A DNA stretch of 64,000 bases. It comes from Ranitomeya imitator. Taxonomy: Eukaryota. The notes below the pieces were generated by a model that was not told the origin of the DNA, made no database searches, and saw only the letters and a program-made list of their open reading frames with translations. Position numbers and translations under genes: made by a program. Below, one piece after another: positions 2,091 through 59,081 of the stretch. Every line of letters starts with the position of its first letter. Position 1 is the first letter of the stretch. The DNA lies in NCBI RefSeq assembly GCF_032444005.1, contig NC_091283.1:29326001-29390000 (forward strand). Reading direction: 5' to 3'.

Positions 2091-2541
2091 ACCTTGTTCT
2101 GTGCCTTTGGGGAGTTGTTGTAGCGACGGCGGTATTGATAATTATTGTTCCTGCCTGAGTGGGAGTAGTTATATCGCCTCGCTGCAGCGTACCCAATAGC
2201 CAGTACATAGCAGGCAGCCTTTCTGGCAACTAATTACCCTAGGTGCAGTATCTAATCTGACCTGAGGGTAAGGGGGGCGCCAGAGAGCTGCAAGTTTTCA
2301 AGCAGAACTGTAAAGCGGGATATACATAAATCCCTGCAGTTCGTGGTATATTGTAGAGCAGTGGGATAACTAGAATAAGCCCCTGCTGTAAATCGATAGG
2401 TCAATAGCCTGGTGTGTGTTTTCATCACAGTGTAGCAGTGGAGGGATAACTAAGATAAGCCCCCTTGCACATGTGATAGCCGTCTGTTGGCCTAAAGTCA
2501 CCCCGATCCGTGATGTAAGAGTGACAGTCACGGTGTGAATC

Positions 2542-6936: not shown

Positions 6937-7156
6937 TTTTATTGTTTTATAATTTTAGGGTGATTCTCAGTGTATCTGTTTTTTAATACCCTCCAGGTAC
7001 TGGCTGTATGGCGCAGTTTCTTGGGACATGATGCACATCAGTGACATGTGTCGTCATGAGGTGATGACGTGAGGCCTATTTCTGCAGACTGTGAAAATCG
7101 GCCATGGAATGACAGGAGGGAGAGCGGAGTACCCAGCTGGGAGCTACAGCAAGAAG

Positions 7157-8039
7157 ACAGGTGAGAGGCAGGAACAGGGCAGGTGAGTACACAACACAGA
7201 TGAGAGGCAGGAATAGGGCAGGTGAGTACAAGAGAGGTGAGAGGCAGGAATAGGGCAGGTGAGTACACAACACAGATGAGAGGCAGGAATAGGGCAGGTG
7301 AGTACAAGAGAGGTGAGAGGCAGGAATAGGGCAGGTGAGTACAAGACAGGTGAGAAGCCGGAATAGGGCAGGTGAGTACAAGACAAGTGAGACGCAGGAC
7401 TAGGGCAGGGGAGTACAAGACAAGTGAGACACAGGAAAAGGGCAGGTGAGTACAAGAGAAGTGAGAGGCAGGACTAGGGCAGGAGAGTACAAGACAGGTG
7501 AGAGGCAGGAATAGGGCAGGTGAGTACAGGACAGGTGAGAGGCAGAAATAGGGCAGGTGAATACAAGACAAGTGAGACACAGAAATAAGGCAGATGAGTA
7601 CAAGACAGGTGAGAGGCAGGAATAGGGCAGGTAGGTACACAACACAGATGAGAGGAAGGAATAGGGCAGGTCAGTACAAGACAAGTGAGACACAGGAAAA
7701 GGGCAGGTGAGTACAAGACAGGTGAGAGGCAGGAATAGGGCAGGAGAGTACAAGACAAATGAGAGGCAGGAATAGGGCAGGTGAGTAGAAGACAGGTGAG
7801 AGGCAGGAATAGGGCAGGTGAGTACAAGACAAGTGAGACGCAGGAATAGGGCAGGTGAGTACAAGACAAGTGAGACACAGGAATAGGGCAGGTGAGTACA
7901 AGACAGGTGAGAGGCAGGAATAGGGCAGGTGAGTGCAAGATAGGTCAGAGGCAGGAATAGGGCAGGTGAGTACAAGACAGGTCAAAGTCAGGAATAGGGC
8001 AGGTGAGTACAAGGCAGGTGAGAGGCAGGAGTAGGGCAG
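7157..8039 (+). repeat. 37-bp purine-rich satellite, left arm (about 24 units)
   Basis: Unit GGGCAGGTGAGTACAAGACAGGTGAGAGGCAGGAATA. Confidence 0.95.
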
Positions 8040-8824
8040 TGTTGTGAATTCCGCTCTTGGGCTCCCTCCAGTGGCTGTAAGTGGCACTTTTGTGAGTTCT
8101 GCTCTTGGGCTCCCTCCGGTGGTTTTAAGTGGAATGGCTGCTCCTTGGATTTAGCAGTCAGCAGCTGCTTCCAATGATTGTCTATTCTGCTCGGCTATTT
8201 AGCCTGGCTCTTTCCTTCAGCTTGTGCCACTTGTCAATGGTTCCTGGTTGGATTCACATCTCTGCTTGGATTTCCCTGATATCCTGACCAGTTCAGCAAA
8301 GATAAGTCCTTGCTTTGCTCTTTTCTGTCCACATGTCCACATTCTATGTTTTTGTCCAGCTTGTCAGTATGGATTTATTCAGTTAAGCTGGAAGCTCTGG
8401 GAAGCAGATTTACCCTCCACACCTTTAGTCAGGTGTGGAGATTTTTGTAAACTCTGTGTGGATTTTTCTAGTTTTTAATACTGACCGCACAGTATTCTGT
8501 CCTGTCCTATCTATCTAGCTAGCTAGACTGGCCTCCTTTGCTACATCCTGGTTTCATTCTACGTATGTCTTTTCCCTCTCCACTCACAGTCATTATTTGT
8601 GGGGGGCTATCTATTCTTTGGGGATTTTCTCTGAGGCAAGATAGCTTTCCTGTTTCTATCTTTAGGGGTAGTTAGTTCTCAGGCTGTGACGAGGTGTCTA
8701 GGGAGTGACAGGAACATCCCACGGCTACTTCTAGTGTTGTGTTGAGCTTAGGAACTGCAGTCAGACAGGTACCACCTCCTTCAGAGCTCGTCCCATGTTG
8801 CTCCTAAACCACCAGTTCATAACA
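8040..8824 (+). repeat. 5' LTR of element A (785 bp)
   Basis: Matches 29950-30749 apart from a net 15-bp deletion and about 10 substitutions (by eye). Confidence 0.95.
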
Positions 8825-29949: not shown

Positions 29950-30749
29950 TGTTGTGAATTCCGCTCTTGGGCTCCCTCCGGTGGTTGTAAGTGGCACTTT
30001 TGTGAGTTCTGCTCTTGGGCTCCCTCCGGTGGTTTTAAGTGGAATGGCTGCTCCTTGGATTTAGCAGTCAGCAGCTGCTTCCACTGATTGTCTAATCTGC
30101 TCGGCTATTTAGCCTGGCTCTTTCCTTCAGCTTGTGCCACTTGTCAATGGTTCCTGGTTGGATTCACATCTCTGCTTGGATTTCCCTGATATCCTGACCA
30201 GTTCAGCAAAGATAAGTCCTTGCTTTGCTCTTTTCTGTCCACATGTTGTGGACTTAATTGTTCTGTACATTCTCTGTTTTTGTCCAGCTTGTCAGTATGG
30301 ATTTATTCAGTTAAGCTGGAAGCTCTGGGAAGCAGATTTACCCTCCACACCTTTAGTCAGGTGTGGAGATTTTTGTAAACTCTGTGTGGATTTTTCTAGT
30401 TTTTAATACTGACCGCACAGTATTCTGTCCTGTCCTATCTATCTAGCTAGACTGGCCTCCTTTGCTACATCCTGGTTTCATTCTACGTATGTCTTTTCCC
30501 TCTCCACTCACAGTCATTATTTGTGGGGGGCTATCTATTCTTTGGGGATTTCCTCTGAGGCAAGATAGCTTTCCTGTTTCTATCTTTAGGGGTAGTTAGT
30601 TCTCAGGCTGTGACGAGGTGTCTAGGGAGTGACAGGAACATCCCACGGCTACTTCTAGTGTTGTGTTGAGCTTAGGAACTGCGGTCAATACAGGTACCAC
30701 CTCCTTCAGAGCTCTTCCCATGTTGCTCCTAAACCACCAGTTCATAACA
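29950..30749 (+). repeat. 3' LTR of element A (800 bp)
   Basis: Homologous to 8040-8824. Confidence 0.95.
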
Positions 30750-33700
30750 GGGCAGGTGAGTACACAACACAGATGAGAGGAAGGAATAGGGCAGGTGAGT
30801 ACAAGACAAGTGAGACGCAGGAATAGGGCAGGTGAGTACAAGACAGGTGAGAGGCAGGAATAGGGCAGGTGAGTGCAAGATAGGTCAGAGGAAGGAATAG
30901 GGCAGGTGAATACAAGACAGATAAGAGGCAGGAATAGGGCAGGTGAGTACAAGACAAGTGAGACACAGGAATAGGGCAGGTGAGTACAAGACAGGTGAGA
31001 GGCAGGAATAGGGCAGGTGTGAACAAGACATGTGAGACACAGGAATAGGGCAGATGAGTACAATGCAGGTGAGAGGCAGGAATAGGGCAGGTGAGTACAA
31101 AACAGGTGAGAGGCAGGAATAAGGCAGGTGAATACAAGACACCTGAAACAAGGGAATAGGGCAGGTGAGTACAGGACAGGTGAGAGGCAGGAATAGGGCA
31201 GGTGCGTACAAGACAGGTGAGAGGCAGGAATAGGCACGTGAGTACAAGACAGGTGAGAGGCAGGAATAGAGTAGGTGAATACAGGACAGCTGAGAGGCAG
31301 GAATAGGGCAGGTGAGTACAGGACAGGTGAGAGGCAGGAATAGGGCAGGTGAGTACAAGATAAGTGAGATGCAGGAATAGGGCAGGTGAGTACCAGACAA
31401 GTGAGACACAGGAAAAGGGCAGGTGAGTACAAGAAAGTGAGAGGCAGGAATAGGGCAGGAGAGTACAAGACAGGTGAGAGGCAGGAATAGGGCAGGTGAG
31501 TACAAGACAGGTGAAACACAGGAATAGGGCAGGTGAGTGCAAGACAGGTGAGAGGCAGGAATAGGGCAGGTGAGTACAAGACAGGTGAGAGGCAGGAATA
31601 GGGCAGGTAAGTACAAGACAAGTGAGAGGCAGGAATAGGGCAGGTGAGTACAGGACAGGTGAGAGGCAGAAATAGGGCAGGTGAATAGAAGACAAGTGAG
31701 ATGCAAGAATAGGGCAGATAAGTACAAGACAGGTGAGAGGCAGGAATAGGGCAGGTAGGTACACAACACAGATGAGAGGAAGGAATAGGGCAGGTCAGTA
31801 CAAGACAAGTGAGACACAGGAAAAGGGCAGGTGAGTACAAGACAGGTGAGAGGCAGGCATAGGGCAGGAGAGTACAAGACAGGTGAGAGGCAGGAATAGG
31901 GCAGGTGAGTAGAAGACAGGTGAGAGGCAGGAATAGGGCAGGTGAGTACAAGACAAGTGAGACGCAGGAATAGGGCAGGTGAGTAGAAGACAGGTGAGAG
32001 GCAGGAATAGGGCAGGTGAGTACAAGACAAGTGAGACGCAGGAATAGGGCAGGTGAGTACAAGACAGGTGAGAGGCAGGAATAGGGCAGGTGAGTGCAAG
32101 ATAGGTCAGAGTCAGGAATAGGGCAGGTGAGTACAAGACAGGTGAGAGGCAGGAATAGGGCAGGTGAGTGCAAGATAGGTCAGAGTCAGGAATAGGGCAG
32201 GTGAGTACAAGACAGGTGAGAAGCAGGAATAGGGCAGGTGAGTGCAAGATAGGTCAGAGGCAGGAATAGAGCAGGTGAATACAAGACAGGTGAGAGGCAG
32301 GAATAGGGCAGGTGAGTACAGGACAGGTGAGACAAGGGAATAGGGCAGGTGGGTACAAGACAGGTGAGTGGCAGGAATAGGGCAGGTGAGTACAAGACAG
32401 GTGAGAGGCAGGAATAGGGCAGGTGAGTACAAGACAAGTGAGATGCAGGAATAAGGCAGGTGAGTACAGGACAGGTGAGAGGCAGGAATAGGGCAGGTGA
32501 GTACAAGATAAGTGAGATGCAGGAATAGGGCAGGTGAGTACAAGACAAGTGAGACACAGGAAAAGGGCAGGTGAGTACAAGACAAGTGAGAGGCAGGAAT
32601 AGGGCAGGAGAGTACAAGACAGGTGAGAGGCAGGAATAGGGCAGGTGAGTACAAGACAGGTGAGACACAGGAATAGGGCAGGTGAGTACAAGACCGGTGA
32701 GAGGCAAGAATAGGGCAGGTAAGTACAAGACAGGTGAGAGGCAGGAATAGGGCAGGTGAGTACAGGACAGGTGAGAGGCAGGAATAGGGCAGGTGAGTAC
32801 AGGACAGGTGAGAGGCAGAAATAGGGCAGGTGAATACAAGACAAGTGAGACGAAGGAATAGGGCAGATGAGTATAAGACAGGTGAGAGGCAGGAATAGGG
32901 CAGGTAGGTATACAACACAGATGAGAGGAAGGAATAGGGCAGGTTAGTACAAGACAAGTGAGACACAGGAAAAGGGCAGGTGAGTACAAGACAGGTGAGA
33001 GGCAGGAATAGGGCAGGTGAGTACAAGACAGGTGAGACACAGGAATAGGGAAGGTGAGTACAAGACCGGTGAGAGGCAAGAATAGGGCAGGTAAGTACAA
33101 GACAGGTGAGAGGCAGGAATAGGGCAGGTGAGTACAGGACAGGTGAGAGGCAGGAATAGGGCAGGTGAGTACAGGACAGGTGAGAGGCAGAAATAGGGCA
33201 GGTGAATACAAGACAAGTGAGACGAAGGAATAGGGCAGATGAGTATAAGACAGGTGAGAGGCAGGAATAGGGCAGGTAGGTACACAACACAGATGAGAGG
33301 AAGGAATAGGGCAGGTCAGTTCAAGACAAGTGAGACACAGGAAAAGGGCAGGTGAGTACAAGACAGGTGAGAGGCAGGAATAGGGCAGGAGAGTACAAGA
33401 CAGGTGAGAGGCAGGAATAGGGCAGGTGAGTAGAAGACAGGTGAGAGGCAGAAATAGGGCAGGTGAGTACAAGACAAGTGAGAAGCAGGAATAGGGCAGG
33501 TGAGTACAAGACAGGTGAGAGGCAGGAATAGGGCAGGTGAGTGCAAGATAGGTCAGATGCAGGAATAGGGCAGGTGAGTACAAGACAGGTCAGAGTCAGG
33601 AATAGGGCAGGTGAGTACAAGACAGGTGAGAGGCAGGAATAGGGCAGGTGAGTGCAAGATAGGTCAGAGGCAGGAATAGGGCAGGTGAATACAAGACAGG

Positions 33701-35820
33701 TGAGAGGCAGGAATAGGGCAGGTGAGTACAGGGCAGGTGAGTCAAGGGAATAGGGCAGGTGGGTACAAGACAGGTGAGAGGCAGGAATAGGGCAGGTGAG
33801 TACAAGACAGGTGAGAGGCAGGAATAGGGCAGGTGAGTACAAGATAAGTGAGATGCAAGAATAGGGCAGGTGAGTACAAGACAGGTGAGAGGCAGGAATA
33901 GGGCAGGTGTGTACAAGGCAAGTGAGACACAGGAATAGGGCAGGTGAGTACAAGACAGGTGAGGGGCAGGAATAGGGCAGGTGAGTACCAAACAGGTGAG
34001 AGGCAGGAATAGGGCAGGTGAGTACAAGACACCTGAGACGAGAGAATAGGGCAGGTGAGTACAGGACAGGTGAGAGGCAGAAATAGGGCAGGTAAATACA
34101 AGACAAGTGAGACGAAGGAATAGGGCAGATGAGTATAAGACAGGTGAGAGGCAGGAATAGGGCAGGTGAGTACAACACAGATGAGAGGAAGGAATAGGGC
34201 AGGTCAGTACAAGACAAGTGAGACACAGGAAAAGGGCAGGTGAGTACAAGACAGGTGAGAGGCAGGAATAGGGCAGGAGAGTACAAGACAGGTGAGAGGC
34301 AGGAATAGGGCAGGTGAGTAGAAGACAGGTGAGAGGCAGGAATAGGGCAGCTGAGTACAAGACAAGTGAGAAGCAGGAATAGGGCAGGTGAGTACAAGAC
34401 AGGTGAGAGGCAGGAATAGGGCAGGTGAGTGCAAGATAGGTCAGATGCAGGAATAGAGCAGGTGAGTACAAGACAGGTCAGAGTCAGGAATAGGGCAGGT
34501 GAGTACAAGACAGGTGAGAGGCAGGAATAGGGCAGGTGAGTGCAAGATAGATCAGAGGCAGGAATAGGGCAGGTGAATACAAGACAGGTGAGAGGCAGGA
34601 ATAGGGCAGGTGAGTACAGGGCAGGTGAGTCAAGGGAATAGGGCAGGTGGGTACAAGACAGGTGAGAGGCAGGAATAGGGTAGGTGAGTACAAGACAGGT
34701 GAGAGGCAGGAATAGGGCAGGTGAGTACAAGACAAGTGAGATGCAAGAATAGGGCAGGTGAGTACAAGACAGGTGAGAGGCAGGAATAGGGCAGGTGTGT
34801 ACAAGGCAAGTGAGACACAGGAATAGGGCAGGTGAGTACAAGACAGGTGAGAGGCAGGAATAGGGCAGGTGAGTACCAAACAGGTGAGAGGCAGGAATAG
34901 GGCAGGTGAGTACAAGACACCTGAGACGAGAGAATAGGGCAGGCGAGTACAGGACAGGTGAGAGGCAGGAATAGGGCAGGAGAGTACAAGACAGGTGAGA
35001 GGCAGGAATAGGGTAGGTGAATACAGGACAGCTGAGAGGCAGGTATAGGGCAGGTGAGTACAGGACAGGTGAGAGGCAGGAATAGGGCAGGTGAGTACAA
35101 GATGATAAGTGAGATACAGGAATAGGACAGGTGAGTACAAGACAAGTGAGACGCAGGAATAGGGCAGGTGAGTACAAGACAGGTGAGAGGCAGGAATAGG
35201 GCAGGTGAGTGCAAGATAGGTCAGAGGAAGGAATAGGGCAGGTAAGTACAAGATAGGTCAGAGGCAGGAACAGGGCAGGTGAATACAAGACAGGTAAGAG
35301 GCAGGAATAGGGCAGGTGAGTAAAAGACAAGTGAGACACAGGAATAGGGCAGGTGAGTACAAGACAGGTGAGAGGCAGGAATAGGGCAGGTGTGTACAAG
35401 ACAAGTGAGACACAGGAATAGAGCAGGTGAGTACAAGACAGGTGAGAGGCAGGAATAGGGCAGGTGAGTACAAAACAGGTGAGAGGCAGGAATAGGGCTG
35501 GTGAGTACAAGACACCTGAGACGAGGGAATAGGGCAGAGTACAGGACAGGTGAGAGGCAGGAATAGGGCAGGTGAGTACAAGACAGGTGAGAGGCAGGAA
35601 TAGGGTAGGTGAATACAGGACAGCTGAGAGGCAGGAATAGGGCAGGTGAGTACAGGACAGGTGAGAGGCAGGAATAGGGCAGGTGAGTACAGGATAAGTG
35701 AGATGCAGGAATAGGACAAGTGAGTACAAGACAAGTGAGAGGCAGGAATAGGACAGGTGAGTACCAGACAGGTGAGAGGAAGGAATAGGCAGGTGAGTAC
35801 AAGACAGGTGCGAGGCAGGA
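30750..35820 (+). repeat. 37-bp purine-rich satellite, right arm (about 137 units)
   Basis: Same unit as 7157-8039. Confidence 0.97.
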
Positions 35821-36047
35821 ATTGGAAATATGAGTACACGTTTTTACTACTTTTTTTAACCCCTTCCGTTTGTCTATTATGTGCTGGCATCTGGAGAGAC
35901 CTCAGCGCATGATAATTGTCTTTTAAGACAATTTAGATTTAAGTCAAATCCTCCTGAAATAATTTTCCTCTCCATTCCATACAATAAATGTAATGGGTCC
36001 TTGACTAAGGGAAAATAACACTGATTGAGGACCTGACAGCCCATTAA

Positions 36048-36429
36048 GGGTATGTGCACAGGTATTCCTGAGGTCTGCGGATTTTTCCGCAGCGGATTTG
36101 TGAAAACCGCAGGTAAAAGGCACTGCTTTTTACCTGCGGAGTTCCTGCGGAATTACTGTGCTTTTTGTGCGGATTCCACTGCGGTTTTACACCTGCGGTT
36201 TTCTATTATGGAGCTGGTGTAAAACCGCTGCGGATTCTGCACAAAGAATTGACATGCTGCGGAATGTAAACCGCTGCGTTTCCGCGTGTTTTTTCCGCAG
36301 CATGTGCACTGCAGATTGTGTTTCCTATAAGTTTACATGGTACTGTAAACACATGGGAAACCGCTGCGGACCCGCAGCTGCGGAAACACTGCAGGTGCGC
36401 AGCAAAATCCGCAGCGTGTGAACATAGCC
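36048..36429. mobile_element. PIF/Harbinger-type MITE (family of 21319/21674)
   Basis: GGGTATGTGCACA ... TGTGAACATAGCC; TAA/TTA flanks; CCGCAG-rich interior. Confidence 0.75.
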
Positions 36430-36624
36430 TTATATTGCCCTGCTCTATTAATAAAGTTTACTATTTGTCTCACTAAATTCTAACTCAGTAACTAATGACA
36501 TTTCTATTTATTGGGGTAATTCTAAAACATTATCAGCTCCCCAGAGATAACTCCACTGCTGCTCTGTCTCTTTATAACAGGAACCTCAGAAGTTCCTGTC
36601 ATTAAACTTTGAAGACAATATCTG

Positions 36625-36666
36625 CCTAGTAACAGATGGTGCGTTAACTGATTGCAATTCTATTGG
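36625..36666 (+). promoter_or_regulatory. MHC-type X1-X2-Y module (RFX / CREB / NF-Y)
   Basis: CCTAGTAACAGATG (1 mismatch to class II X1 CCTAGCAACAGATG), then TGCGTTA, then ATTGG starting 24 nt after X1. Confidence 0.65.
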
Positions 36667-36824
36667 CTGCAGCATCTAACATTGTCATTATCCAGAGACT
36701 TATCATATAATGTGTGATGTACAATAACAAATTGTATTGTGGTGCTGTGTTAGCCAGAAAAATCAATGTGAATACTTTTCTGCCCAATGATGACAGAAGT
36801 ATTCTAGGAGTGATATATATATAA

Positions 36825-38032
36825 CACTGGGGAACACAATTTTTTAAGAGTTAGGTCAGACAACTGTTCTTAATTAATTTTTGGATGCTGAATCCAGAAA
36901 TGATCTCAGTTTTTCTCTATCACGTCAAGTTTTTGAACTATAGGATTTTTGTCTTCTCAAAACTATGTAAACTACTGTACCTAAAAAGTGTTTGTTGTTT
37001 TAAAATAGTACAAATATGAACAAAAAATGAAATATATAAGAAATAGGTATGACAAAGTTGTGACTACTCTTACAAGTTGCCACGTAGCTCTATATGAGTC
37101 GAATTGTAATCAGATAACAAGTCTTATTACAGATATCAGTAGAATTGTGCTTCTCTGGCAGGTAAAGGTACCTTCACACATAACGATATCGTTAACGATA
37201 TCGTTGCTTTTTGTGACGTAGCAACGATATCGTTAAGGAAATCGCTATGTGTGACAGCGACCAACGATCAGGCCCCTGCTGGGAGATCGTTGGTCGCTGA
37301 ACAAAGTCCAGAACTTTATTTCGTTGCTGGATCTCCCGCGGACATCGCTGGATCGGCGTGTGTGACACCGATCCAGCGATGTCTTCACTGGTAACCAGGG
37401 TAAACATCGGGTAACTAAGCGCAGGGCCGCGCTTAGTAACCCGATGTTTACCCTGGTTACCATCCTAAAAGTAAAAAAAAACAAACACTTCATACTTACC
37501 TAACGCTGTCTGTCCCCCGGCGCTGTGCTCTGCTCTCCTCCTGCACTGGCTGTGAGCGTCGGTCAGCCGGAAAGCAGAGCGGTGACGTCACCGCTCTGCT
37601 TTCCGGCCGCTGTGCTCAGTCAGTGCAGGAGGAGAGCAGAGCACAGCGCTGGAGGACAGACGGCTGTAGGTAAGTATGTAGTGTTTGTTTTTTTTACTTT
37701 TAGGATGGTAACCAGGGTAAACATCGGGTTACTAAGCGCGGCCCTGCGCTTAGTTACCCGATGTTTACCCTGGTTACCGGCATTGTTGGTCGCTGGAGAG
37801 CTGTCTGTGTGACAGCTCTCCAGCGACCAAACAGCGACGCTGCAGCGATCCGGATCGTTGTCGGTATCGCTGCAGCGTCGCTTAATGTGAAGGGGCCTTA
37901 AGTTGTGTAGGAAAAACTTGACGTGCTAGAAAAAAAACTGACTACATTTTTGGAATCAGCATGCCAATTTTAGTATAAATCAGCTCAAAAACCTAACTCA
38001 ACAGAAATTTTTTTTCAAATTGTTCTCCTGTG
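36825..38032. mobile_element. Probable non-autonomous Tc1/mariner-type element hosting a MITE
   Basis: Imperfect TIR CACTGGGGAACACAATTT / AAATTGTTCTCCTGTG followed by TA. Confidence 0.4.
37166..37898. mobile_element. Harbinger-type MITE with internal hairpins
   Basis: TAA|AGGTACCTTCACA...TGTGAAGGGGCCT|TAA; two long internal palindromes (GTAACCAGGGTAAACATCGGG...CCCGATGTTTACCCTGGTTAC). Confidence 0.85.
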
Positions 38033-38363
38033 TAATGTGTGATAGGGGTGATGTATATAATGCATATAATGTGTGAGCATGCATAGTATAGGTGAGCATG
38101 CGCAGAATAGGGAAGGGGAGCAGGCACAGTATATACTTTTATATACCTTGTTGTTTTCTATACTATATTTGGATATATAATACTGTATGTGCATGCAATT
38201 CATCCAGGACTCTACAGTCAGACCCCAGTGATCAGTTGATAAAAGGCTTGTGCCAAGTTTGTAAGTTAATAACAGTGAAGTGCTTTGCGGAAGGGCAGAG
38301 AGGAACCTGAGGAGATTACTACCACAGTGAGGACCCTGCTGTGAAATACGATGGATCCCGTTA

Positions 38364-38692
38364 GGCTACGTTCACATTAGCGTTATGCTAGTTTGCGTCG
38401 GGTTTGCGTCGGACGACGCAGCGGCGACGCATGCGTCATGCGCCCCTATATTTAACATGGGGGACGCATGCGTTTTTGTTTGTTGCGTTGTGCGACGCAT
38501 GCGTCTTTTTTACCGCAAGCGTCGGACCAAGAAAACGCCACAAGTTGCATTTTTCTTGCGTCCAAATTTCGGCAAAAAACGACGCATGCGTCGCAAAACG
38601 CAGCGTTTTTGCGTGCGTTTTGGTGCGTTTTAGCGTGCGTTGTGCGTTGAATCGCCGACGCAGCGGCGCACAACGCTAATGTGAACGTAGCC
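38364..38692. mobile_element. PIF/Harbinger MITE
   Basis: TIR GGCTACGTTCACATTAGCGT / ACGCTAATGTGAACGTAGCC, TTA TSD on both sides. Confidence 0.88.
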
Positions 38693-38763
38693 TTACTGTC
38701 AATGGGCACAGATGGGCTCTCAAATGTGCATCAAATGAAAAATCCCTCACAAGTCCATTAAAC

Positions 38764-38819
38764 TGTAAAGCGCTGCGGAATATGTTGGCGCTATATAAAT
38801 AAAGATTATTATTATTATT
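38764..38819 (+). mobile_element. CR1/L2-type LINE 3' tail fragment
   Basis: TGTAAAGCGCTGCGG...ATAAATAAAG followed by (ATT)n. Confidence 0.5.
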
Positions 38820-39154
38820 TCCCATGACTTTGCTCCTGGAAACAGAAAAGTAATGTGTACACAGCCCTAGATGTGAGTTTTCATTATTTTATTGTCCCCA
38901 ATGTCTTGCTGTATGTAAAAAAGTAAGTGTCAGGCATAATTACACCTCCCAACCGTCCCAGATACAGCAGGACATTACTGAATTTGTAAATCTCTGCTGG
39001 GAGGTTGGGGTTCCAATTTCGAGTGTACCGAGTCCCCAGGATGATCAGTTTAGAAATTTTGTGGATATCATCTGCGCTGCTGTGAAAAATGAATGTCCAG
39101 GCGTAATGGAGATGAAGGATGACGGTTGACCAGTGGATCTGAGGCAGCTGTTAA

Positions 39155-42100
39155 CCCCTTTACCCCCAAGGGTGGTTTGCACGTTAATGACCGGGCCAAT
39201 TTTTACAATTCTGACCACTGTCCCTTTATGAGGTTATAACTCTGGAACGATTCAACGGATCCCAGTGAATCTGACATTGTTTTCTCGTGACATATTGTAC
39301 TTCATGACAATGGTAAAAATTCTTTGATAGTACCTGCATTTATTTGTGAAAAAAGCGGAAATTTGGCGAAAATTATGAAAATTTTGCAATTTTCCAACTT
39401 TGAATTTTTATGCAATTAAATCACAGAGATATGTCACATAAAATACTTAATAAGTAACATTTCCCACATGTCTACTTTACATCAGCACAATTTTGGAACC
39501 AAAATTTTTTTTGTTAGGGAGTTATAAGGGTGAAAAGTTGACCAGCAATTTCTCATTTCTACAACACCATTTTTTTTTAGGGACCACATCTCATTTGAAG
39601 TCATTTTGAGGGGTCTATATGATAGAAAATACCCACGTGTGACACCATTCTAAAAACTACACCCCTCAAGGTGCTCAAAACCACATTCAAGAAGTTTATT
39701 AACCCTTCTGGTGCTTCACAGGAATTTTTGGAATGTTTAAATAAAAATGAACATTTAACTTTTTTTCACAAAAAATTTAATTCAGCTCCAATTTGTTTTA
39801 TTTTACCAAGGGTAACAGGAGAAAATGGACCGCAAACATTGTTGTACAATTTGTCCTGAGTACGCCAATACCCCACATGTGGGGGTAAACCACTGTTTGG
39901 GCGCATGGCACAGCTCGGAAGCGAAGGAGCGCCATTTGACTTTTCAATGCAAAATTGACTGGAATTGAGATGGGACGCCATGTTTCGTTTGGAGAGCCCC
40001 TGATGTGCCTAAACATTGAAACCCCCCAAAAGTGACACCATTTTGGAAAGTAGACCCCCTAAGGAACTTATCTAGAGGTGTGGTGAGCTCTTTGACCCAC
40101 CAAGTGCTTCACAGAAGTTTATAATGTAGAACCGTAAAAATAAAAAATCATATTTTTTCACAAAAATTATCTTTTCGCCCCCAATTTTTTATTTTTCCAA
40201 GGGTAAGAGAAGAAATTGGACCCCAAAAGTTGTTGTACAATTTGTCCTGAGTAAGCTGATACCCCATGTGTGGGGGTAAACCACTGTTTGGGCGGATGGG
40301 AGAGCTCGGAAGGGAAGGAGCGCCGTTTGACTTTTCAATGCAAAATTGACAGGAATTGAGATGGGATGCCATGTTGCGTTTGGAGAGCCACTGATGTGCC
40401 TAAACATTGAAACCCCCCACAAGTGACACCATTTTGGAAAGTAGACCCCCTAAGGAACTTATCTAGAGGTGTGGTGAGCACTTTGACCCACCCAGTGCTT
40501 CACAGAAGTTTATAATGCAGAACCGTAAAAATAAAAAATCATATTTTTTCACAAAAATTATCTTTTTGCCCCCAATTTTTTATTTTTCCAAGGGTAAGAG
40601 AAGAAATTGGACCCCAAAAGTTGTTGTACAATTTGTCCTGAGTACGCTGATACCCCATATGTGGGGGTAAACCACTGTTTGGGCGGATGGGAGAGCTCGG
40701 AAAGGAAGGAGCGCCGTTTGACTTTTCAATGCAAAATTGACAGGAATTGAGATGAGACGCCATGTTGCGTTTGCAGAGCCCCTAATGTACCTAAATAGTA
40801 GAAACCCCTCACAAGTGACACCATTATGGAAAGTAGACCCCCTAAGGAACTTATCTAGATGTGTGGTGAGCGCTTTGACCCACCAAGGGCTTCACAGAAG
40901 TTTATAATGGAGAGCCGTAAAAATAAAACAAAAATTTTTTTCCGCAAAAATTATTTTTTAGCCCCCAGTTTTGTATTTTCCCGAGGGTAAAAGGAGAAAT
41001 TGGACCCCAAAATTTGTTGTCCAATTTGTCCTGAGTGCGCTGATACCCCATATGTGGGGGGGAACCACTGTTTGGGCGCATGGGAGGGGTCGGAAGGGAA
41101 GGAGCTCCATTTGAATGCAGACTTACATGGAATGGTCTGCAGGTGTCACATTGCGTTTGCAGAGCCCCTAATGTACCTAAACAGTAGAAACCCCCCACAA
41201 GTGACACCATTTTGGAAAGTAGACCCCCTAAGGAACTTATCTAGATGTGTGGTGAGCGCTTTGACCCACCAAGGGCTTCACAGAAGTTTATAATGGAGAG
41301 CCGTAAAAATAAAACAAAAACATTTCCCACAAAAATTATTTTTTAGCCCCCAGTTTTGTATTTTCCCGAGGGTAAAAGGAGAAATTGGACCCCAAAATTT
41401 GTTGTCCAATTTGTCCTGAGTGCGCTGATACCCCATATGTGGGGGGGAACCACTGTTTGGGCGTATGGGAGGGGTCGGAAGGGAAGGAGCTCCATTTGGA
41501 ATGCAGACTTAGATGGAATGGTCTGCAGGTGTCACATTGCATTTGCAGAGCCCCTAATGTACCTAAACAGTAGAAACCCCCCACAAGTGACACCATTTTG
41601 GAAACTAGACCCCTAAGGAACTCATATAGATGTGTTGTGAGAGCTTTGAACCCCCAAGTGTTTCACTACAGTTTGTAACGCAGAGCCGTAAAAATAAAAA
41701 ATCTTTTTTTTCCCACAAAAATTATTTTTTAGCCCCCAGTTTTGTATTTTCCCAAGAGTAACAGGAGAAATTGGACCCCAACAGTTGTTGTCCTATTTGT
41801 CCTGAGTACACTGATACCCCATATGTTGGGGTAAACCCCTGTTTGGGCACACGGGCGAGCTCGGAAGGGAAGAAGCACTGTTTTACTTTTTCAACGCAGA
41901 ATTGGCTGGAATTGAGATCGGACGCCATGTCGCTTTTGGAGAGCCCCTGATGTGCCTAAACAGTGGAAACCCCCCAATTATAACTGAAACCCTAATCCAA
42001 ACACTCCCCTAACCCTAATTCCAACGGTAACCCTATTCACACCTCTAACCCTTACACACCCCTAACCCTAATCCCAACCCTATTCCCAACTGTAAATGTA

Positions 42101-45294: not shown

Positions 45295-45841
45295 GACACG
45301 TCCCCACTTGCACTTTCAGCCTGACCTGCATATGGCTTCTACGTCAGATTTCTCATGACCGGCACATTGAATCTATGCAGAAAAAAAAATAATCCATATG
45401 TAGGATGGTGATGAAACATTTAGGAATCCTTCGCTCATTCGCCTTTTTCATGTTAAAAAATGTAATAAATAATAATTGTGTTTTTTATTCTGTAACATTA
45501 TATAGAAGCGTCTTCCCTGTTCTCTTTTAAATCCTCTAAAACAGCCGGTGAACATGAAAAACAAAAACAAAAACAAAAAAACACGCCATACCAAGAGAAT
45601 GCTGAGCTTCAGCTGAAAAATAAAATGTGAGAAGTCATATTTGTGATTGCATTATTTCTAAATGTAAATTTTTGCTGTGAACATTTAGACATTGGAGTCC
45701 TTGGTCATGAAAGGGTAACGGAGCTAAGTAAATTACCGCGAACCATGAAGTAAACCTAGATGAGTTCTTTCAGATTTGTGCTTCGATGAACAGTCAATAC
45801 GAGACTAAAGAGGAGGAGGAGAGTAGGATCATGTGCGACAC

Positions 45842-45854
45842 TTTCAGTTTCATT
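45842..45854. promoter_or_regulatory. ISRE/IRF-E in the PSMB8 promoter
   Basis: TTTCAGTTTCATT (reverse AATGAAACTGAAA, GAAANNGAAA consensus) about 135 bp upstream of the ATG; CRE-like GACGTCA nearby. Confidence 0.7.
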
Positions 45855-45988: not shown

Positions 45989-46120
45989 ATGGCTCTTCTG
46001 AGTTTTTGTGGGTTGTCTGGGCATGAGGACTGGAGACTGCCCCTCTACGGTGGCAAAATTTCACCCACAGTCTCCTTTAAACCATATAACACTGAACTGA
46101 TGGTGCCGCCCGGATGCCAG
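45989..46120 (+). CDS. PSMB8: PSMB8 exon 1 (propeptide)
   Basis: MALLSFCG...ELMVPPGCQ then GT donor; phase 0. Confidence 0.88.
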
Positions 46121-50639: not shown

Positions 50640-52610
50640 AAATACTGATCATGATGAGCAACGGCGTGTTCTATACATAATACTGATAATAAGGAGCGTT
50701 CTGTACATAATACTGACTCTGAGGAATGGTGGGGTTTTCTGTACATACGGTTGTGCTCAAAAGTTTACATACCACAGCAGAATTTTTGCTTTCTTGATGT
50801 TGTTTTCAGAAAATTTGAATGATAACACCAAAACTTGTTCTTCACTCATGGTTAGTGGTTGGGTGAAGCCATTTATAGTCAAACTTCTGTGTTTTCACTT
50901 TTTAAATCTTAATGACAACTCAAAAAATCCAAATGACCTTGATCAAAAGTTCACATACACTGGTGAGTTGGGCCTGATAACATGCACAGAAGTTGACACA
51001 AATGGGTGTGAATGGCTACTAAAGGTAACATCCTCACCTGTGACCTGTTTGCTTGTAATCAGTGTGTGTGCATAAAAGCTGAGTGAGCTTCTGGGATCCA
51101 GACAGACTCTTGCATCTTTTATCCAGCCACTGACGTTTCTGGATTGTGAATCATGGGGAAAGCCAGAGAATTGTCAACGGATCTACGGGAAAAGGTAACT
51201 GAACTGTATCAAACAGGAAAGAGATTCAAAAAGATATCCAAGGAATTGATAATGCCAGTCAGCAGCGTTCAAACTATGATTAACAAACGGAAAATCAGGG
51301 GCTTTGCAATAACAAAACCAGGTAGACCAACAAAATTGTTGTCCACAACTGCCAGGAAAATTGTTTGGTATGCAAAGAAAAACCCTCAAATAACATCAAA
51401 TGAAATACTGGACTCCCTGAAAACTAGCGGTGTGGCTGTTTCAAGATGAACAATAAGGAATAAGAAATGGGCTGCCTGGTCGAGTCGCCAGAAGATAGCC
51501 ATTACTGTGCAAATGCCACAAAGAATCTCACCTACAATACGCAAAACAGCACAGAGACAAGGCTCAAAATGTCTGGAACAAGGTAGTTTGGAGTGATGAG
51601 ACCAATATTGAACTGTTTGGCCACAAACATAAAGGTAACATTTGTAGAGAGGTCAACAACGCTTATGATGAAAGGAACACTATTCCTACTGTAAAGCATG
51701 GAGGTGGATAGCTGATGTTTTGGGGATGTGTGAGCTACAAAGGCAAAGGAAACTTGGTCAAAGTTGAAGGAAAGATGAATGCAGCACGTTATCAGCAAAT
51801 ATTGGAGGCAAATTTGCAATCATCAGTCCAGAAGCTGCACATGGGACGTACGTGGACGTTCCAACATGACAACAATCCAAAACACAAGGCCAAGTCGACC
51901 TGTCATTGGCTACAGCAGAACAAAGTGAAGGTTCTGGAGTGGTCATCTCAGTCTTCTGACCTCAGTATCATTGAGCCACTCTGGGGAGATCTCAAGCGCA
52001 CAGTTCATGCTAAACAGCCTAGGAATTCACAGGAACTGGAGGCTTTTTGCCAAGAAGGGTGGGCAGCTTTACCATCTGAGAAAATAAAGAACATCCACAA
52101 CTACCATAAAAAACCTCAAGCTGTTATTGATGTTAGAGGGGGCAATACACGGTATTAAGAAATTGCGTATGTGAACTTTTGATCTGGGTCATTTGGAAGT
52201 TTTGGGTTGTCATTATTATTTAAAAAGAGAAAACACAGTAGTTTGACAATACAAATAACCATGAGTGGAGAAAAAGGTTTGGTGTGAATGATAATTCATA
52301 TTCTACGAAAAAAGACAAAGAAAGCAAAAATTCTGCCAAGGTATGTAAACATTTGAGCACAACTGCAATTCTAACAATGAGGAACAATGGTGCGTTCTGT
52401 ACATAGTACTGACGATAAGGAGCGATGGTGCGTTCTGTACATGTACATAATACTGACGATGAGGAGCAATGGTGTGTTCTGTACATAATACTGACGATGA
52501 GGAGCAATGTTGTGTTCTGTACATAATACTGACGATAAGGATCGATAGTGCGTTCTATACATAATACTGACGATGATGAGCGGCGCTGTGTTCTGTACAT
52601 AATACCATAC
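50640..52610. repeat. 38-bp minisatellite (50640-50745 and 52370-52610) split by a Tc1
   Basis: Unit CTGTACATAATACTGACGATGAGGAGCAATGGTGTGTT on both sides of the Tc1. Confidence 0.8.
50748..52365 (+). mobile_element. Tc1-family transposon with disrupted transposase (51153-52158) in PSMB8 intron 4
   Basis: Long TIRs (CGGTTGTGCTCAAAAGTTTACATAC / GTATGTAAACATTTGAGCACAACTG); paired-like N-terminus; WSDE, FQHDN, DLSIIEPLW motifs; stops and frameshifts. Confidence 0.92.
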
Positions 52611-52848: not shown

Positions 52849-53267
52849 GTAAGTACCTTTGCTACTGTCTGCAGATATAAAACCGTGTCTCATATATAAA
52901 TAGGCATGTTTACTGAATATGTACATTTTCCACATATTATTACTTCTCTTTACAAAATTGTTTAGCTCTGCTAGTGTCACAGGGACTCAAGACCCCTTTT
53001 CTTGTGATTGTGGGGGCCCCAGCAATCATATGTTCATCTCCTGACTTATGTTTTAGAGATTTTTTGTGGGCCACCCCCTTTTAAGCTTCAGACCTTTCTG
53101 GTACTCCTAGAAGAACATCATCTTCACCACATTTCTTGACTTTGTGGTAAGACTATTGGCCAATTAGCCATTTACATTCAGTTAGACGGTGCAGAGGCGG
53201 TGTTGGGGAAGTTCTCCCAATAGACAGTGCAGTGGCGGTGTGATTGAAGCTCTGCCCACACGGTGGT

Positions 53268-54727
53268 GCGAAGCAAGCTCTGCCCACTAGATGGTGCAGA
53301 AGTGGTGAGGATGAAGCTCTGCCCATTAGTCGGGGCAGCAGAGGTGAGGATGAAGCTCTGCCCATTAGTTGGGGCAGCAGAGGTGAGGATGAAGCTCTGC
53401 CCATTAGTCTGGGCAGCAGAGGTGAGGATGAAGCTCTGCCCATTAGTCGGGGCAGCAGAGGTGAGGATGAAGCTCTGCCCATTAGTCGGGGCAGCAGAGG
53501 TGAGGATGAAGCTCTGCCCATTAGTCGGGGCAGCAAAGGTGCAGATGAAGCTCTGCCCATTAGTCGGGGCAGCAGAGGTGAGGATGAAGCTCCGCCCATT
53601 AGTTGGGGCAGCAGAGGTGCGGATGAAGCTCTGTCCATTAGTCGGGGCAGCAGAGGTGAGGATGAACCGCTGTCCATTAGTTGGGGCAGCAGAGGTGCGG
53701 ATGAACCGCTGTCCATTAGTTGGGGCAGCAGAGGTGCGGATGAAGCTGTCCATTTGTCGGGGCAGCAGAGGTGTAGACAAATCTCTGCTAATTAGTCAGG
53801 GCATCAGCGGTGAGAATGAAGCTCTGTCCATTAGTCCGGATAGAAGAGGTGAGGATGAAGCTCTGCTCATTAGTAAGGGCACCAGAGGTGAGGAAGAAGC
53901 TTTGTCAATTCGTCCGGGCAGCAGAGGTGAGGATAAAGCTCTGCCTATTTGTTGGGGCAGCAGAACTGCAGGTGAAGCTCTGCCCATTAGTCAGAGCAGC
54001 AGAGGTGAGAATGAAGCTCTGCCCATTAGGCGGGACTGCAGAGGTGCGGATGAACCTCTGCCCATTAGTCGGGGCAGCAGAGGTGAGGATGAAGCTCTGC
54101 CCATTAGGCGGGACTGCAGAGGTGCGGATGAACCTCTGCCCATTAGTCGGGGCAGCAGAGGTGAGGATGAAGCTGTGCCCATTAGTCGGGGCAGCAGAGG
54201 TGAGGATGAAGCTGTGCCCATTAGGCGGGACTGCAGAGGTGCGGATGAAGCTCTGCCCATTAGTCGGGCAGCAGAGGTGCGGATGAAGCTCTGCCCATTA
54301 GTCGGGGCAGCAGAGGTGAGAATGAAGCTGTGCCCATTAGTCGGGGCAGCAGAGGTGAGGATGAAGCTCTGCCCATTAGGCGGGACTGCAGAGGTGAGGA
54401 TGAAGCTCTGCCTATTTGTCGGGGCAGCAGAGGTGCGGATATGAAGCTCTGTCCATTAGGCGGGACTGGAGAGGTGCGGATGAAGCTCTGCCCATTAGTC
54501 GGGCAGCAGAGGTGCGGATGAAGCTCTGCCCATTAGTCGGGGCAGCAGAGGTGAGGATGAAGCTCTGCCCATTAGGCGGGACTGCAGAGGTGTGGATGAA
54601 GCTCTGCCCATTAGTCGGGGCAGCAGAGGTGCGGATGAAGCTCTGCCCATTAGTCGGGGCAGCAGAGGTGCGGATGAAGCTCTGCCCATTAGTCGAGCAG
54701 CAGAGGTGAGGATGAAGCTCTGCCCAT
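53268..54727. repeat. 39-bp minisatellite in PSMB8 intron 5 (about 37 units)
   Basis: Unit GAAGCTCTGCCCATTAGTCGGGGCAGCAGAGGTGAGGAT. Confidence 0.95.
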
Positions 54728-55599: not shown

Positions 55600-56122
55600 A
55601 CTTTTTATGTCTGTTTCATTATTATTACAATGCTAACAATATATTAAAATATAACAATAAGCAAATATAAAGATAAAAAAGATAAAGGTTTTTTTTTTTT
55701 TTTTTGCAAAACTACATAAATGACAAAGGTGCAGCTAGGTGAGCCTTATAAGTGCAATATCTGGCTGCCATTTTCACATTTGCTGTTGGTGAATGAGGAC
55801 GCTGGTACAATTGTATACATTCTAGACAATGCTCTGCGAGCTCAACATCCCGGACTCCAGACTGATACATGGGAACAAATGAGCAGAGAATTGTGTGCGG
55901 CTCACAGAGCATCGAGTCCACTTCTCGGCTGAGGGTAGGATTAGCAATGGACAGGTACAGCCTCTGAATGTAGTTCTCCTTCACTGACAGCAAGCACATC
56001 TGCAATGTGTGAACACGGAAAATACTGGTTGGGATGTATTGTAAAAAGTCACTATGCAGCAAAACAGGAGTAATAGTCCATAGATAAAGTTTGGGGCTAC
56101 ACATCCAAAGCAGTAATCTAAA

Positions 56123-56826
56123 AGGTACCTTCACACTCAGCGACGCTGCAGCGATACCGACAACGATGTCGATCGCTGCAGCGTCTCTGTTTGGTCGCTG
56201 GAGATCTGTCACACAGACCGCTCTCCAGCGACCAACGATGCCGGTAACCAGGGTAAACATCGGGTTACTAAGCGCAGGGCCGCACTTAGTAACCCGATGT
56301 TTACCCTGGTTACCATCGTAAAAGTAAAAAAAACAAACACTACATACTTACCTTCAGCTGTCTGTCCCCGGCACTCTGCTTCTCTGCACTGGCTGTGAGC
56401 ACAGCGGCCGGAAAGCAGAGCGGTGACGTCACCGCTGTGCTTTCCGGCTGTTCGGCGCTCACAGCCAGTGCAGGAAGCAGAGCGCCGGGGACAGACAGCT
56501 GAAGGTAAGTATGTAGTGTTTGTTTTTTTTACTTTTACGATGGTAACCAGGGTAAACATCGGGTTACTAAGCGCGGCCCTGCGCTTAGTAACCCGATGTT
56601 TACCCTGGTTACCAGTGAAGACATCGCTGAATCAGCGTCACACACGCCGATTCAGCGATGTCTGCAGGGAGTCCAGCAACGAAATAAAGTTCTGGACTTT
56701 CTGCAAAGACCAACGACAGCACAGCAGGATCCTGATCGCTGCTGCGTGTCAAACTGAACGATATCGCTATCCAGGACGCTGCAACGTCACGGATCGCTAG
56801 CGATATCGTTCAGTGTGAAGGTACCT
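56123..56826. mobile_element. Harbinger-type MITE, inverted relative of 37166-37898
   Basis: TAA|AGGTACCTTCACAC...GTGTGAAGGTACCT|TAA; same internal palindromes. Confidence 0.87.
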
Positions 56827-56964
56827 TAAGACTGTAATGTCTGTAATGTCTCGCTGCCACAAAACGCAACAAATGATAGAAAATGCTAAAAGGTGGCAGA
56901 TATAACCATACAATCTGATCTCACACGTCCTCAAGTCGCTGTATGCAGCGTGTCACATCCACGA

Positions 56965-57950: not shown

Positions 57951-58046
57951 CTAAAATACAGCACATGACTATTATCTCCACACACGAGTCATTCATTTAT
58001 TGCTGCGAAAATACAAGACCGTCCTTCAGAGTGTGCAAAGCGCGCA

Positions 58047-58775
58047 GCCGCACAGAGAACATCAGCCACACAGAGAACATCAGCCACACAGAGAACATCA
58101 GCCACACAGAGCACATCAGCCACACAGAGAACATCAGCCACACAGAGAACATCAGCCACGCAGAGCACATCAGCCACGCAGAGCACATCATATGCACAGA
58201 GAACATCAGCCGCACAGAGAACATCAGCCACACAGAGAACATCAGCCACACAGAGAACATCAGCCACACAGAGAACATCAGCCACACAGAGAACATCAGC
58301 CACGCAGAGCACATCAGCCACGCAGAGCACATCATATGCACAGAGAACATCAGCCGCACAGATAATATCAGCAGCACAGAGCACATCATATGCACAGAGA
58401 ATATCAGCAGCACAGAGCACATTAGCTGCACAGAGAATGTCAGCCGTACAGAGCACATCAGTCACATAGAGAACATGATCCGCACAAAGAACATCAGCCA
58501 CGCAGAGAACATCATCCGCGAAGAGAATATCAGCTGCACAGAGGACATCAGCAACACAGAGGACATCAGCAACACAAAGGACATCAGCCACACAGAGAAC
58601 ATCAGCAGCACAGAGCACCAGCACATCAGCCACATAAAGAACATCAGCCAAACAAGACACATCAAACGCACCCAGCACATCAGCTGCAGAGAACATAAGC
58701 CACACAGAGAATATTGGCCACACAGAGCAAATCAGCCGCAGAGAGCACATCAGCCACACAGAGAACATCAGCCGC
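58047..58775. repeat. 18-bp minisatellite in a TAP1 intron
   Basis: Unit CACAGAGAACATCAGCCA. Confidence 0.93.
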
Positions 58776-59081
58776 TCCTATATGACCACCATGTATTGTA
58801 ATGAAGCCTGTATAACGGTATTATTCACATACCGTATAGCACTGTTATTATATGGCTTTATGTATGGAGCAGTTTCGGTCACTGCTGGTATCTGAGCACT
58901 GTATGGGGGATTATACATATGTATGTTATTAGGCCGATATATGGTAGTGGTATGTAGGCATTAAACATTACACCAAATGGGGTAATAACAGAAAGTACAA
59001 CCCAGGGCAGAGTGTAATAACCCTTGTGTGACCCGACGCTTCCATCATACACGCCTCGTATATCATCTGTCCTACACCCAC

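Follow-up and report, generated by a model that had tools for sequence, protein, structure and literature searches.

A conserved S-X1-X2-Y module in the upstream region of frog PSMB8, a candidate enhancer

The PSMB8 region of Ranitomeya imitator

The window, by which is meant the whole stretch of 64,000 nucleotides of Ranitomeya imitator DNA analysed here, contains the gene PSMB8 on the + strand in six coding pieces that extend from 45989 to about 55462 and were identified from open reading frames and exon pieces. The coding part of exon 1 (45989-46120, + strand, 44 codons) aligns with exon 1 of other frogs. Exon 5, which was searched alone with the exons left unjoined, showed up to 85% identity to the best-scoring PSMB8-like matches, and its bullfrog match led to named full-length frog PSMB8 proteins. 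The 3' end of a TAP gene is found at 57.8-59.4 kb on the - strand. The proximal ISRE of PSMB8, ACTTTCAGTTTCAT, is located at 45840-45853 on the + strand with the canonical sequence ACTTTCAGTTTC, 149 nt before the ATG, and is accompanied by a TATA-like run about 90 nt before the ATG. In the same way, an ISRE of the form ACTTTCA[GC]TTTC was observed about 150-333 nt before the PSMB8 ATG in all seven frog species examined.

The region that precedes the gene contains LTR and LINE retroelements at 8-30 kb and a 37-bp satellite at 30.6-35.9 kb. Past the satellite lies a short cluster of S-, X1-, X2- and Y-like boxes, hereafter the module. Copy number around it was read from public contig depth in four runs over positions 35950-39650. 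A depth of 10-23, corresponding to single-copy DNA, was found only at 36446-36693, 38058-38305 and near 38926-39049, the rest of the interval reaching 10^4 to 10^6. The module is thus carried by a single-copy island of about 290 bp (36430-36717), with a depth of 10-23 in two DNA runs and flanks at 10^4-10^6; a contig from organism B covers 36430-36710, and no second copy of the island was found in the window. An initial reading of the letters, referred to here as the sequence-only reading, had placed the motif in unique DNA. The single-copy state is borne out, and the unique stretch is a narrow one, 36446-36693 being the only interval at single-copy depth around the motif.

Directly 3' of the island, a transposon block with high-copy depth occupies 36718-38062. 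Two exact copies of a 14-bp direct repeat, CATATAATGTGTGA, delimit this block at 36704-36717 and 38063-38076, and nested in it is a 736-bp palindromic MITE (37163-37898) that was skipped by the contigs of all four runs. Inverted repeats were recognized in this MITE, and the window contains another copy of it at 56122-56827. More repeats follow at 38306-38925 and 39050-41976. The distance between the module and the PSMB8 ATG (45989) was measured as 9,364 nt, in agreement with the 9.3 kb first proposed. About 7 kb of that distance had been ascribed to transposable elements; the insertions are indeed present, and the length that could be shown to be repeat is at least 4.9 kb. Finally, no tRNA was detected between 36 and 46 kb, and an Rfam scan of the same interval returned only sub-threshold hairpin matches located in palindromic MITEs.

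Boxes of the module

The X1-like box CCTAGTAACAGATG is located at 36625-36638 on the + strand and differs from the HLA-DRA X1 box by a single mismatch. Together with a pyrimidine-rich lead, TCTG, it forms at 36621-36638 a presumed RFX site of the CCYAGCAACAGATG type. It is followed on the same strand by TGCGTTA (36640-36646), one mismatch from the TGCGTCA of DRA, within an X2-like, CRE-like box GTGCGTTA at 36639-36646. The HLA-DRA X1/X2 text used for these comparisons, CCTAGCAACAGATGCGTCATCTC, was confirmed against a published probe (PMC4806502), relative to which the start of the X2-like box is shifted 3 nt later with respect to X1. The Y box (36657-36671, + strand), an inverted CCAAT and presumed NF-Y site, contains ATTGG at 36662-36666, which begins 37 nt from the start of X1. 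The X-to-Y distance in HLA-DRA is also 37 nt. The sequence-only reading had described precisely such an X1 box, one mismatch away from the class II box, with TGCGTTA and then ATTGG behind it; letters and position of the former are as it gave them and the latter two lie where it placed them.

An S-like box, TAAACTTTGAAGAC, is present at 36603-36616 on the + strand and aligns without gaps to the modules of other frogs, its CTTTG core being presumably in register with the HLA-DRA S box. It had been described as weak, which undersold it, this stretch being a conserved block among frogs. SXY modules have their S (W) box at a fixed spacing, about 15-16 bp upstream of X, and the frog block occupies the corresponding place. 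At 36695-36704 (+ strand), the sequence GAGACTTATC is a decayed NF-kB-like site that shares 7 of 10 positions with GGGACTTTCC; the consensus GGGRNNYYCC is not matched in the window at this position, which is conserved in frogs.

A few other features were recorded in the vicinity. A 47-residue open reading frame overlaps the module, and a TATA-like sequence, CATATAAT, is located 3' of it at 36704-36711. A degenerate pair of X-like and ATTGG motifs at 36484-36514 was dropped, since the two motifs stand 26 nt apart, which is not the expected spacing, and organism B differs there at three bases.

Modules upstream of PSMB8 in other frogs

PSMB8 loci were retrieved with 10 kb of flanking sequence and numbered so that the PSMB8 ATG is at position 10001 on the + strand in every locus. 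They comprise one locus of Nanorana parkeri (L001), two of Eleutherodactylus coqui (L002 and L003), two of Engystomops pustulosus (L004 and L005), one of Dendropsophus ebraccatus (L006), one of Mixophyes fleayi (L007) and two of Spea bombifrons (L008 and L009). Anomaloglossus, the closest relative listed, as well as Bufo and Xenopus lie outside this comparison.

A plain BLAST of the window island against Nanorana gave no match. A module was found by motif scan in Engystomops, in the same orientation as in the window (+ strand; L004 6339-6454 and L005 6652-6767, 3.3-3.6 kb upstream of PSMB8), and its flanks matched two weaker matches of Nanorana. BLAST joined the Engystomops and Nanorana modules with an E value of 7e-7, the latter being present in two copies on the - strand, 3.5 and 6.8 kb upstream of the gene. 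With a profile derived from these aligned modules, further copies were recovered on the + strand of Dendropsophus (L006 1154-1261, 8.8 kb upstream, E = 8e-9), Mixophyes (three copies in L007, 3.6-5.3 kb upstream, E = 8e-8 to 2e-15) and Spea (L009 8573-8644, 1.4 kb upstream, E = 1.5e-8). Moreover, when a profile was made of Engystomops and Nanorana only, without Ranitomeya, its top match in the window was 36603-36675 (21.8 bits, E = 5.5e-6), where all boxes between S and Y align in a colinear manner and only one 1-nt gap is needed.

All ten profile matches with E <= 1 in about 270 kb of frog loci fall within the 10-kb upstream flanks, and none was found in gene bodies, downstream regions or the gaps between TAP genes. 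Eight of the ten module copies are oriented toward PSMB8 and the Nanorana copies point away from it. In Eleutherodactylus coqui, the 10 kb that precede PSMB8 yielded no module. The module lies upstream of an antigen-presentation gene in six genera, and homologous S-X-Y modules occur 1.4-8.8 kb upstream of PSMB8 in five genera other than Ranitomeya, which is the conservation in other anurans that had been put forward as a check. The ancestral distance of about 2 kb that had been proposed is compatible with the 1.4 kb of Spea and the 3.3-3.6 kb of Engystomops, Mixophyes and Nanorana. Because matching copies stand upstream of PSMB8 in these five genera, the module is neither an orphan nor, most probably, the leftover promoter of another gene, and its sequence marks it as an old and conserved putative control element upstream of frog PSMB8.

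The flanks of the island are dense in transposons and many windows were scanned, and one could argue on these grounds that the boxes came together by chance or form part of a dispersed repeat. Nevertheless, X1 with at most one mismatch occurs only once on the two strands of the 64-kb window. A first-order Markov simulation of both strands yielded 0.4 X1-like matches per Mb, that is 0.026 expected per 64 kb, and 20 Mb of simulated sequence contained no X1 match followed by ATTGG at a distance of 35-39 nt; a relaxed scan tolerating up to five mismatches and including the Y box found nothing comparable elsewhere in the window. The scan with constrained spacing thus sets the motif far beyond chance. 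The profile made without Ranitomeya recovered the module independently, and the module is not a dispersed repeat because the island of about 290 bp that carries it is at single-copy depth. An origin by chance or from a repeat is consequently regarded as extremely improbable.

In Spea, the module is located between two head-to-head genes that are 3 kb apart, a proteasome gene of 216 residues on the - strand and PSMB8 on the + strand. The former is taken to be PSMB9 by the likeness of its exons to the human protein. No module precedes the second PSMB8 copy of Spea, which follows a TAP gene and has an ISRE. Since this second copy, placed after a TAP gene, has the ISRE without the module, the module may belong to the divergent PSMB9/PSMB8 pair.

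Conservation of boxes and spacing

The order of elements in frog modules is S, pyrimidine lead, X1, X2, Y and then the NF-kB site. The distance from X1 to Y is 37 or 38 nt in the ten copies, and no insertion or deletion was found between S and X1 in any aligned module. Conservation of each block was expressed as the mean majority fraction in an alignment of nine frog sequences. Among the S, X and Y blocks, X1 was the most conserved (0.87), ahead of Y (0.80) and S (0.78), and the NF-kB site reached 0.88. Spacers and flanks had values of 0.53-0.66, with 0.53 for the spacer between S and X. The X1 of Mixophyes copy c is exactly the DRA X1 box. At the X2 position, other frogs read GATGATGC and Nanorana copy 1 reads TGATGTCA.

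The NF-kB site starts at +78 to +84 from the start of X1, about 35-40 nt after Y. A perfect GGGACTTTCC was observed in Engystomops, Dendropsophus, Nanorana and Mixophyes copy c, and the site of Spea, CGGACTTTCC, is one mismatch away from it. In Mixophyes copy c, TATAAA is found at +58.

The Mixophyes copies were also compared with each other. Copies b and c align by BLAST only over about 120 bp, which correspond to the module, with 71% identity; copy a was recovered by the profile only, and the flanks of the copies no longer align. This restriction of the alignment to the module argues for selection acting on it. The overall pattern looks like a footprint, in which boxes and spacing are kept and spacers have diverged. 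The XY motif of human class II promoters is constant in length (47-49 bp), its spacing being conserved and its spacer sequence not (PMC4381081). At the level of sequence, the pattern of boxes and spacing in frogs is the one described for mammalian modules.

It had been suggested that the module could be what is left of the promoter of a lost MHC gene, which would be one of class I or class II. The class II-like X1, identical to that of DRA in one Mixophyes copy, speaks for such an origin, and the copies duplicated locally in Mixophyes and Nanorana might conceivably be traces of a duplicated gene family. On the contrary, a regular expression search for Ig C1-set or class II beta-1 signatures in the six frames of the window gave nothing outside the TAP region, ten sampled open reading frames between the module and PSMB8 had no credible match to a Pfam domain, and no leader-like open reading frame was found within 200 nt after the Y box. 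The absence of an intact exon near the motif, already remarked upon by the sequence-only reading, thus extends in these searches to class I or class II exon relics. In addition, the module has the same place relative to PSMB8 in all six genera, no gene of class I or class II was called between the two, and conservation focused on the boxes across distant frog lineages would be unexpected for a dead promoter. The description as an orphan does not hold for what is a regular feature upstream of PSMB8 in frogs, and we consider an origin as a leftover promoter very unlikely.

Variation and state of the module in Ranitomeya

Position 36639, the first of the X2-like box, is G in the window and A in the eight other frog sequences (8/8). 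Organism B has A as well, and so does a second contig from the same DNA run; the variant is either an allele or a paralogue. It could be a haplotype-specific regulatory variant linked to old PSMB8 allelic lineages. The second contig of this run has two changes, both outside the cores of X1, X2 and Y. Over the 281-bp island, 11 substitutions and 17 gap letters separate organism B from the window, and the substitutions listed all lie outside these three cores. The conservation of the boxes between organisms A and B is not significant by itself, since about one change was expected in them and none was seen.

In the window, S, X1 and Y are intact and the interval between Y and the NF-kB site is shortened. 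The module may be weaker in Ranitomeya than in other frogs because of its displacement to 9.4 kb, its decayed NF-kB site and the X2 substitution in the reference haplotype. A further step in this direction would be that the module, active in other frogs, is a decaying relic that no longer contributes to expression in Ranitomeya. In favor of it, the NF-kB site retains 7 of 10 positions, against a perfect GGGACTTTCC or one mismatch to it in other frogs, the conserved A at 36639 is replaced by G, at least 4.9 kb of repeats separate the module from PSMB8, and the lack of a module within 10 kb in E. coqui indicates that loss or displacement happens. However, S, X1 and Y are intact here with exact spacing, the X1, X2 and Y cores were spared by the listed substitutions of organism B and by the two changes of the second contig, and the Dendropsophus module has a perfect NF-kB site at 8.8 kb, so that distance alone does not imply loss. 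We regard decay into an inactive relic as rather unlikely.

A contig of 216 nt (36567-36782, depth 5) without any difference from the window was found in a run whose RNA label was guessed. The same possibly-RNA run had no contig on the other single-copy islands. This is at most suggestive of either local transcription or enrichment, and it is the one possible sign of expression or accessibility that was seen. It has a bearing on whether the module could be an alternative distal promoter, with a start just 3' of the NF-kB site that would give a non-coding first exon of PSMB8 or an unannotated non-coding RNA. The contig overlaps the region concerned, TATA-like sequences occur 3' of the module (the one noted above in the window and TATAAA in Mixophyes copy c), and SXY modules of promoters precede the start site with Y as the box nearest to it, eight of the ten copies being turned toward PSMB8. 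Yet the contig begins 58 nt upstream of X1 and so crosses the module instead of starting after it, BLAST across genera between the module and the proximal promoter recovered only one high-copy fragment and no conserved block, the ISRE close to the ATG marks the usual promoter in all frogs examined, and the Nanorana copies face away from PSMB8. A distal promoter is thus deemed unlikely.

Proposed function and significance

The interpretation that is preferred here is that the module is a conserved upstream S-X1-X2-Y enhancer of frog PSMB8, ancestrally equipped with an NF-kB site, and we consider this fairly probable on the basis of the sequence comparisons. A distal RFX- and NF-Y-dependent enhancer of the PSMB8/TAP cluster had been among the first suggestions; its position is now supported by five other genera, and factor binding, choice of co-activator, target gene and activity are what we infer from there, PSMB8 being the presumed target by position alone.

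By analogy with SXY modules of mammals, an RFX complex would bind X1, a CREB/ATF factor X2 and NF-Y the Y box, cooperatively and at a fixed spacing. The platform so formed would recruit an NLR co-activator, more likely NLRC5 and possibly CIITA. NLRC5 is favored because the presumed target belongs to the class I pathway, because of the NF-kB site and because the X region of Nanorana resembles a mouse H2-D primer. From a distance, the module would act on the promoter of PSMB8, where a separate conserved ISRE and a TATA-like sequence are found 90-150 nt before the ATG. NF-kB would be a further input in most frogs alongside the promoter-proximal ISRE. That the Nanorana copies point away from PSMB8 fits with an enhancer independent of orientation, like human S-Y modules (PMC1802633). 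The ancestral module probably also served the divergently transcribed PSMB9, as it may do in Spea, and transposon insertions would have moved it to 9.4 kb from the ATG in Ranitomeya.

More tentatively, and with some doubt, the module could be the ancestral shared node of a head-to-head PSMB9-PSMB8 pair and orthologous to the mammalian PSMB9/TAP1 SXY module. If this were true, RFX/NF-Y control of antigen processing, and probably NLRC5 control too, would have been in place in the MHC core before the split between amphibians and amniotes, and the module would have outlived changes in gene order and, in poison frogs, a heavy transposon invasion.

Antigen presentation in mammals has its master switch in SXY modules and their NLR co-activators. 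To our knowledge, almost nothing is documented on SXY/NLR control in amphibians. The order and spacing of the boxes, kept beside PSMB8 across pelobatoid, myobatrachoid, hyloid and ranoid frogs, make the module a testable cis-element. With it, one may examine whether the immunoproteasome was under NLRC5- or CIITA-type control before amniotes arose, and how the regulation of linked PSMB8/TAP/class I haplotypes is coordinated in frogs. The module would also be an example of a short functional island that persists in a region made mostly of transposon and satellite.

Comparison with known systems

A close mammalian counterpart is the SXY module of the bidirectional TAP1/PSMB9 promoter, which is occupied by NLRC5 and depends on RFX5. 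For instance, mouse Tap1 and Psmb9 have one NLRC5-occupied SXY peak in common (PMC4374748). Here too, an S-X-Y module stands beside immunoproteasome and antigen-processing genes in the MHC. The mammalian module is shared between head-to-head genes, as would be the one of Spea if its neighbor is PSMB9 as we take it to be, and NF-kB and ISRE inputs exist at both loci. In contrast, the frog partner is PSMB8 and not TAP1, the module is located 1.4-9.4 kb from the start codon and not in a promoter-proximal position, the NF-kB site is 3' of Y, and the ISRE is separate and near the ATG.

Another group of counterparts is that of the distal S-Y and X-box-like elements of the human MHC (PMC1802633), namely the DRA enhancer, elements #2, #4, #6 and #8 and the XL9 neighborhood. 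These are complete modules located kilobases from promoters, which are bound by RFX and CIITA and work as enhancers independently of orientation (PMC1802633, PMC4243378). Since human distal S-Y modules sit kilobases from promoters, a position that looked orphan is normal for this kind of element. In addition, CIITA binding intervals were associated with PSMB8 in human monocytes treated with IFN-gamma (PMC4243378). The human distal modules serve class II genes, whereas the frog module is tied by its position to an immunoproteasome gene and carries an NF-kB site in most frogs.

With the proximal promoter of HLA-DRA, the module shares the order of the boxes, an X1 that differs at one base and an equal X1-to-Y distance of 37 nt. 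On the contrary, it is followed by no class II gene, octamer or start site, and its X2 is shifted by 3 nt with one mismatch. The S box is what decides the choice of NLR in the mouse. MHC class I promoters likewise receive inputs from NF-kB, from IRF through the ISRE and from the RFX/CREB/NF-Y platform, and an X-box ChIP primer for mouse H2-D (PMC4374748) agrees with the pyrimidine-X1-X2 segment of Nanorana at 18 of 22 positions by hand count. Nevertheless, their NF-kB site, ISRE and SXY module follow each other in that order within about 200 bp, whereas in frogs the SXY module is followed by the NF-kB site and the ISRE is kilobases away.

This kind of element is therefore already known, since SXY modules of mammalian antigen-processing genes, distal SXY enhancers of the MHC and CIITA near PSMB8 are all established. 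A full-text literature search found no paper describing SXY modules in frogs or amphibians. What appears to be new is the frog element itself, its layout of SXY followed by NF-kB, its constant link to PSMB8, extended in Spea to the presumed PSMB9, and its conservation across four anuran superfamilies.

A conserved ISRE close to the PSMB8 start codon

In each of the seven frog species examined, a canonical ISRE of the ACTTTCA[GC]TTTC type is conserved a short distance 5' of the PSMB8 ATG. It lies at 45840-45853 in the window and, in the fetched PSMB8 loci L001, L002, L004, L006, L007, L008 and L009, at 150-333 nt ahead of the ATG at position 10001. The element marks the presumed interferon-responsive proximal promoter.

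Copies and variants of the upstream SXY module

The S-X1-X2-Y (SXY) module upstream of PSMB8 was found to be locally multiplied in two frogs, Mixophyes and Nanorana. Mixophyes carries three old copies (L007 4642-6543), two of which are joined by BLAST over only about 120 bp while the third is detected by profile only. The Nanorana duplication (L001 2978-3528 and 6231-6755) spans about 550 bp at 86% identity with the module included, and is younger than the Mixophyes copies.

Within the window, two single-base variants, 36639 G>A and 36652 T>C, were observed both in a second contig from the best DNA run and in organism B, which is represented among the public sequencing runs compared. With A at 36639, this conserved X2 position again carries the base that all other frogs have there. 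These differences could reflect either regulatory variation specific to one haplotype or a paralogous copy. In a run whose type was guessed as RNA, the module was covered by a 216-nt contig (36567-36782) with no differences and a depth of 5; neighbouring single-copy islands had zero depth in that run.

Repeats and transposons around the module and the gene

The module starts about 0.8 kb past the end of an array of about 5 kb of a 37-bp satellite (30616-35800). The same unit forms an array of about 1 kb at 7119-8160, and the two arrays flank 22 kb of LTR and LINE retroelements. The module is followed directly on its 3' side by a transposon block (36718-38062) bordered on both sides by an identical 14-bp direct repeat, within which a palindromic MITE of 736 bp is nested (37163-37898). 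Each of the four runs includes some contigs without this MITE, and a second copy of it is located downstream of PSMB8, ahead of the TAP gene (56122-56827). At 38759-38819, a 55-64-bp fragment of a very high-copy repeat shares 85-91% identity with PSMB8-upstream sequences of E. coqui, Mixophyes, Spea and Nanorana; the fragment had no match in tRNA or Rfam scans and probably represents a conserved core segment from an old SINE or transposon.

Elsewhere, a Tc1/mariner-like transposase remnant occupies a PSMB8 intron (51150-52160), with further copies at 60.3-61.6 kb. Other tandem arrays comprise one with a period of about 265 bp (2500-5500), an array of short period in the final intron of PSMB8 (53150-54700) and a heptad-like array within the TAP gene (57965-58800).

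The antigen-processing block of Spea bombifrons

In Spea bombifrons, the antigen-processing block is compact and duplicated (L009, L008). PSMB8 (L009 10001-12476, + strand) stands head-to-head, 3 kb apart, with a gene on the - strand (L009 4589-6988) that we take to be PSMB9 from the likeness of its exons to the human protein. This PSMB9/PSMB8 pair is followed by TAP genes in convergent and divergent orientation and then by a second PSMB8-TAP-TAP unit; the SXY module is present only at the PSMB8 copy adjoining PSMB9.
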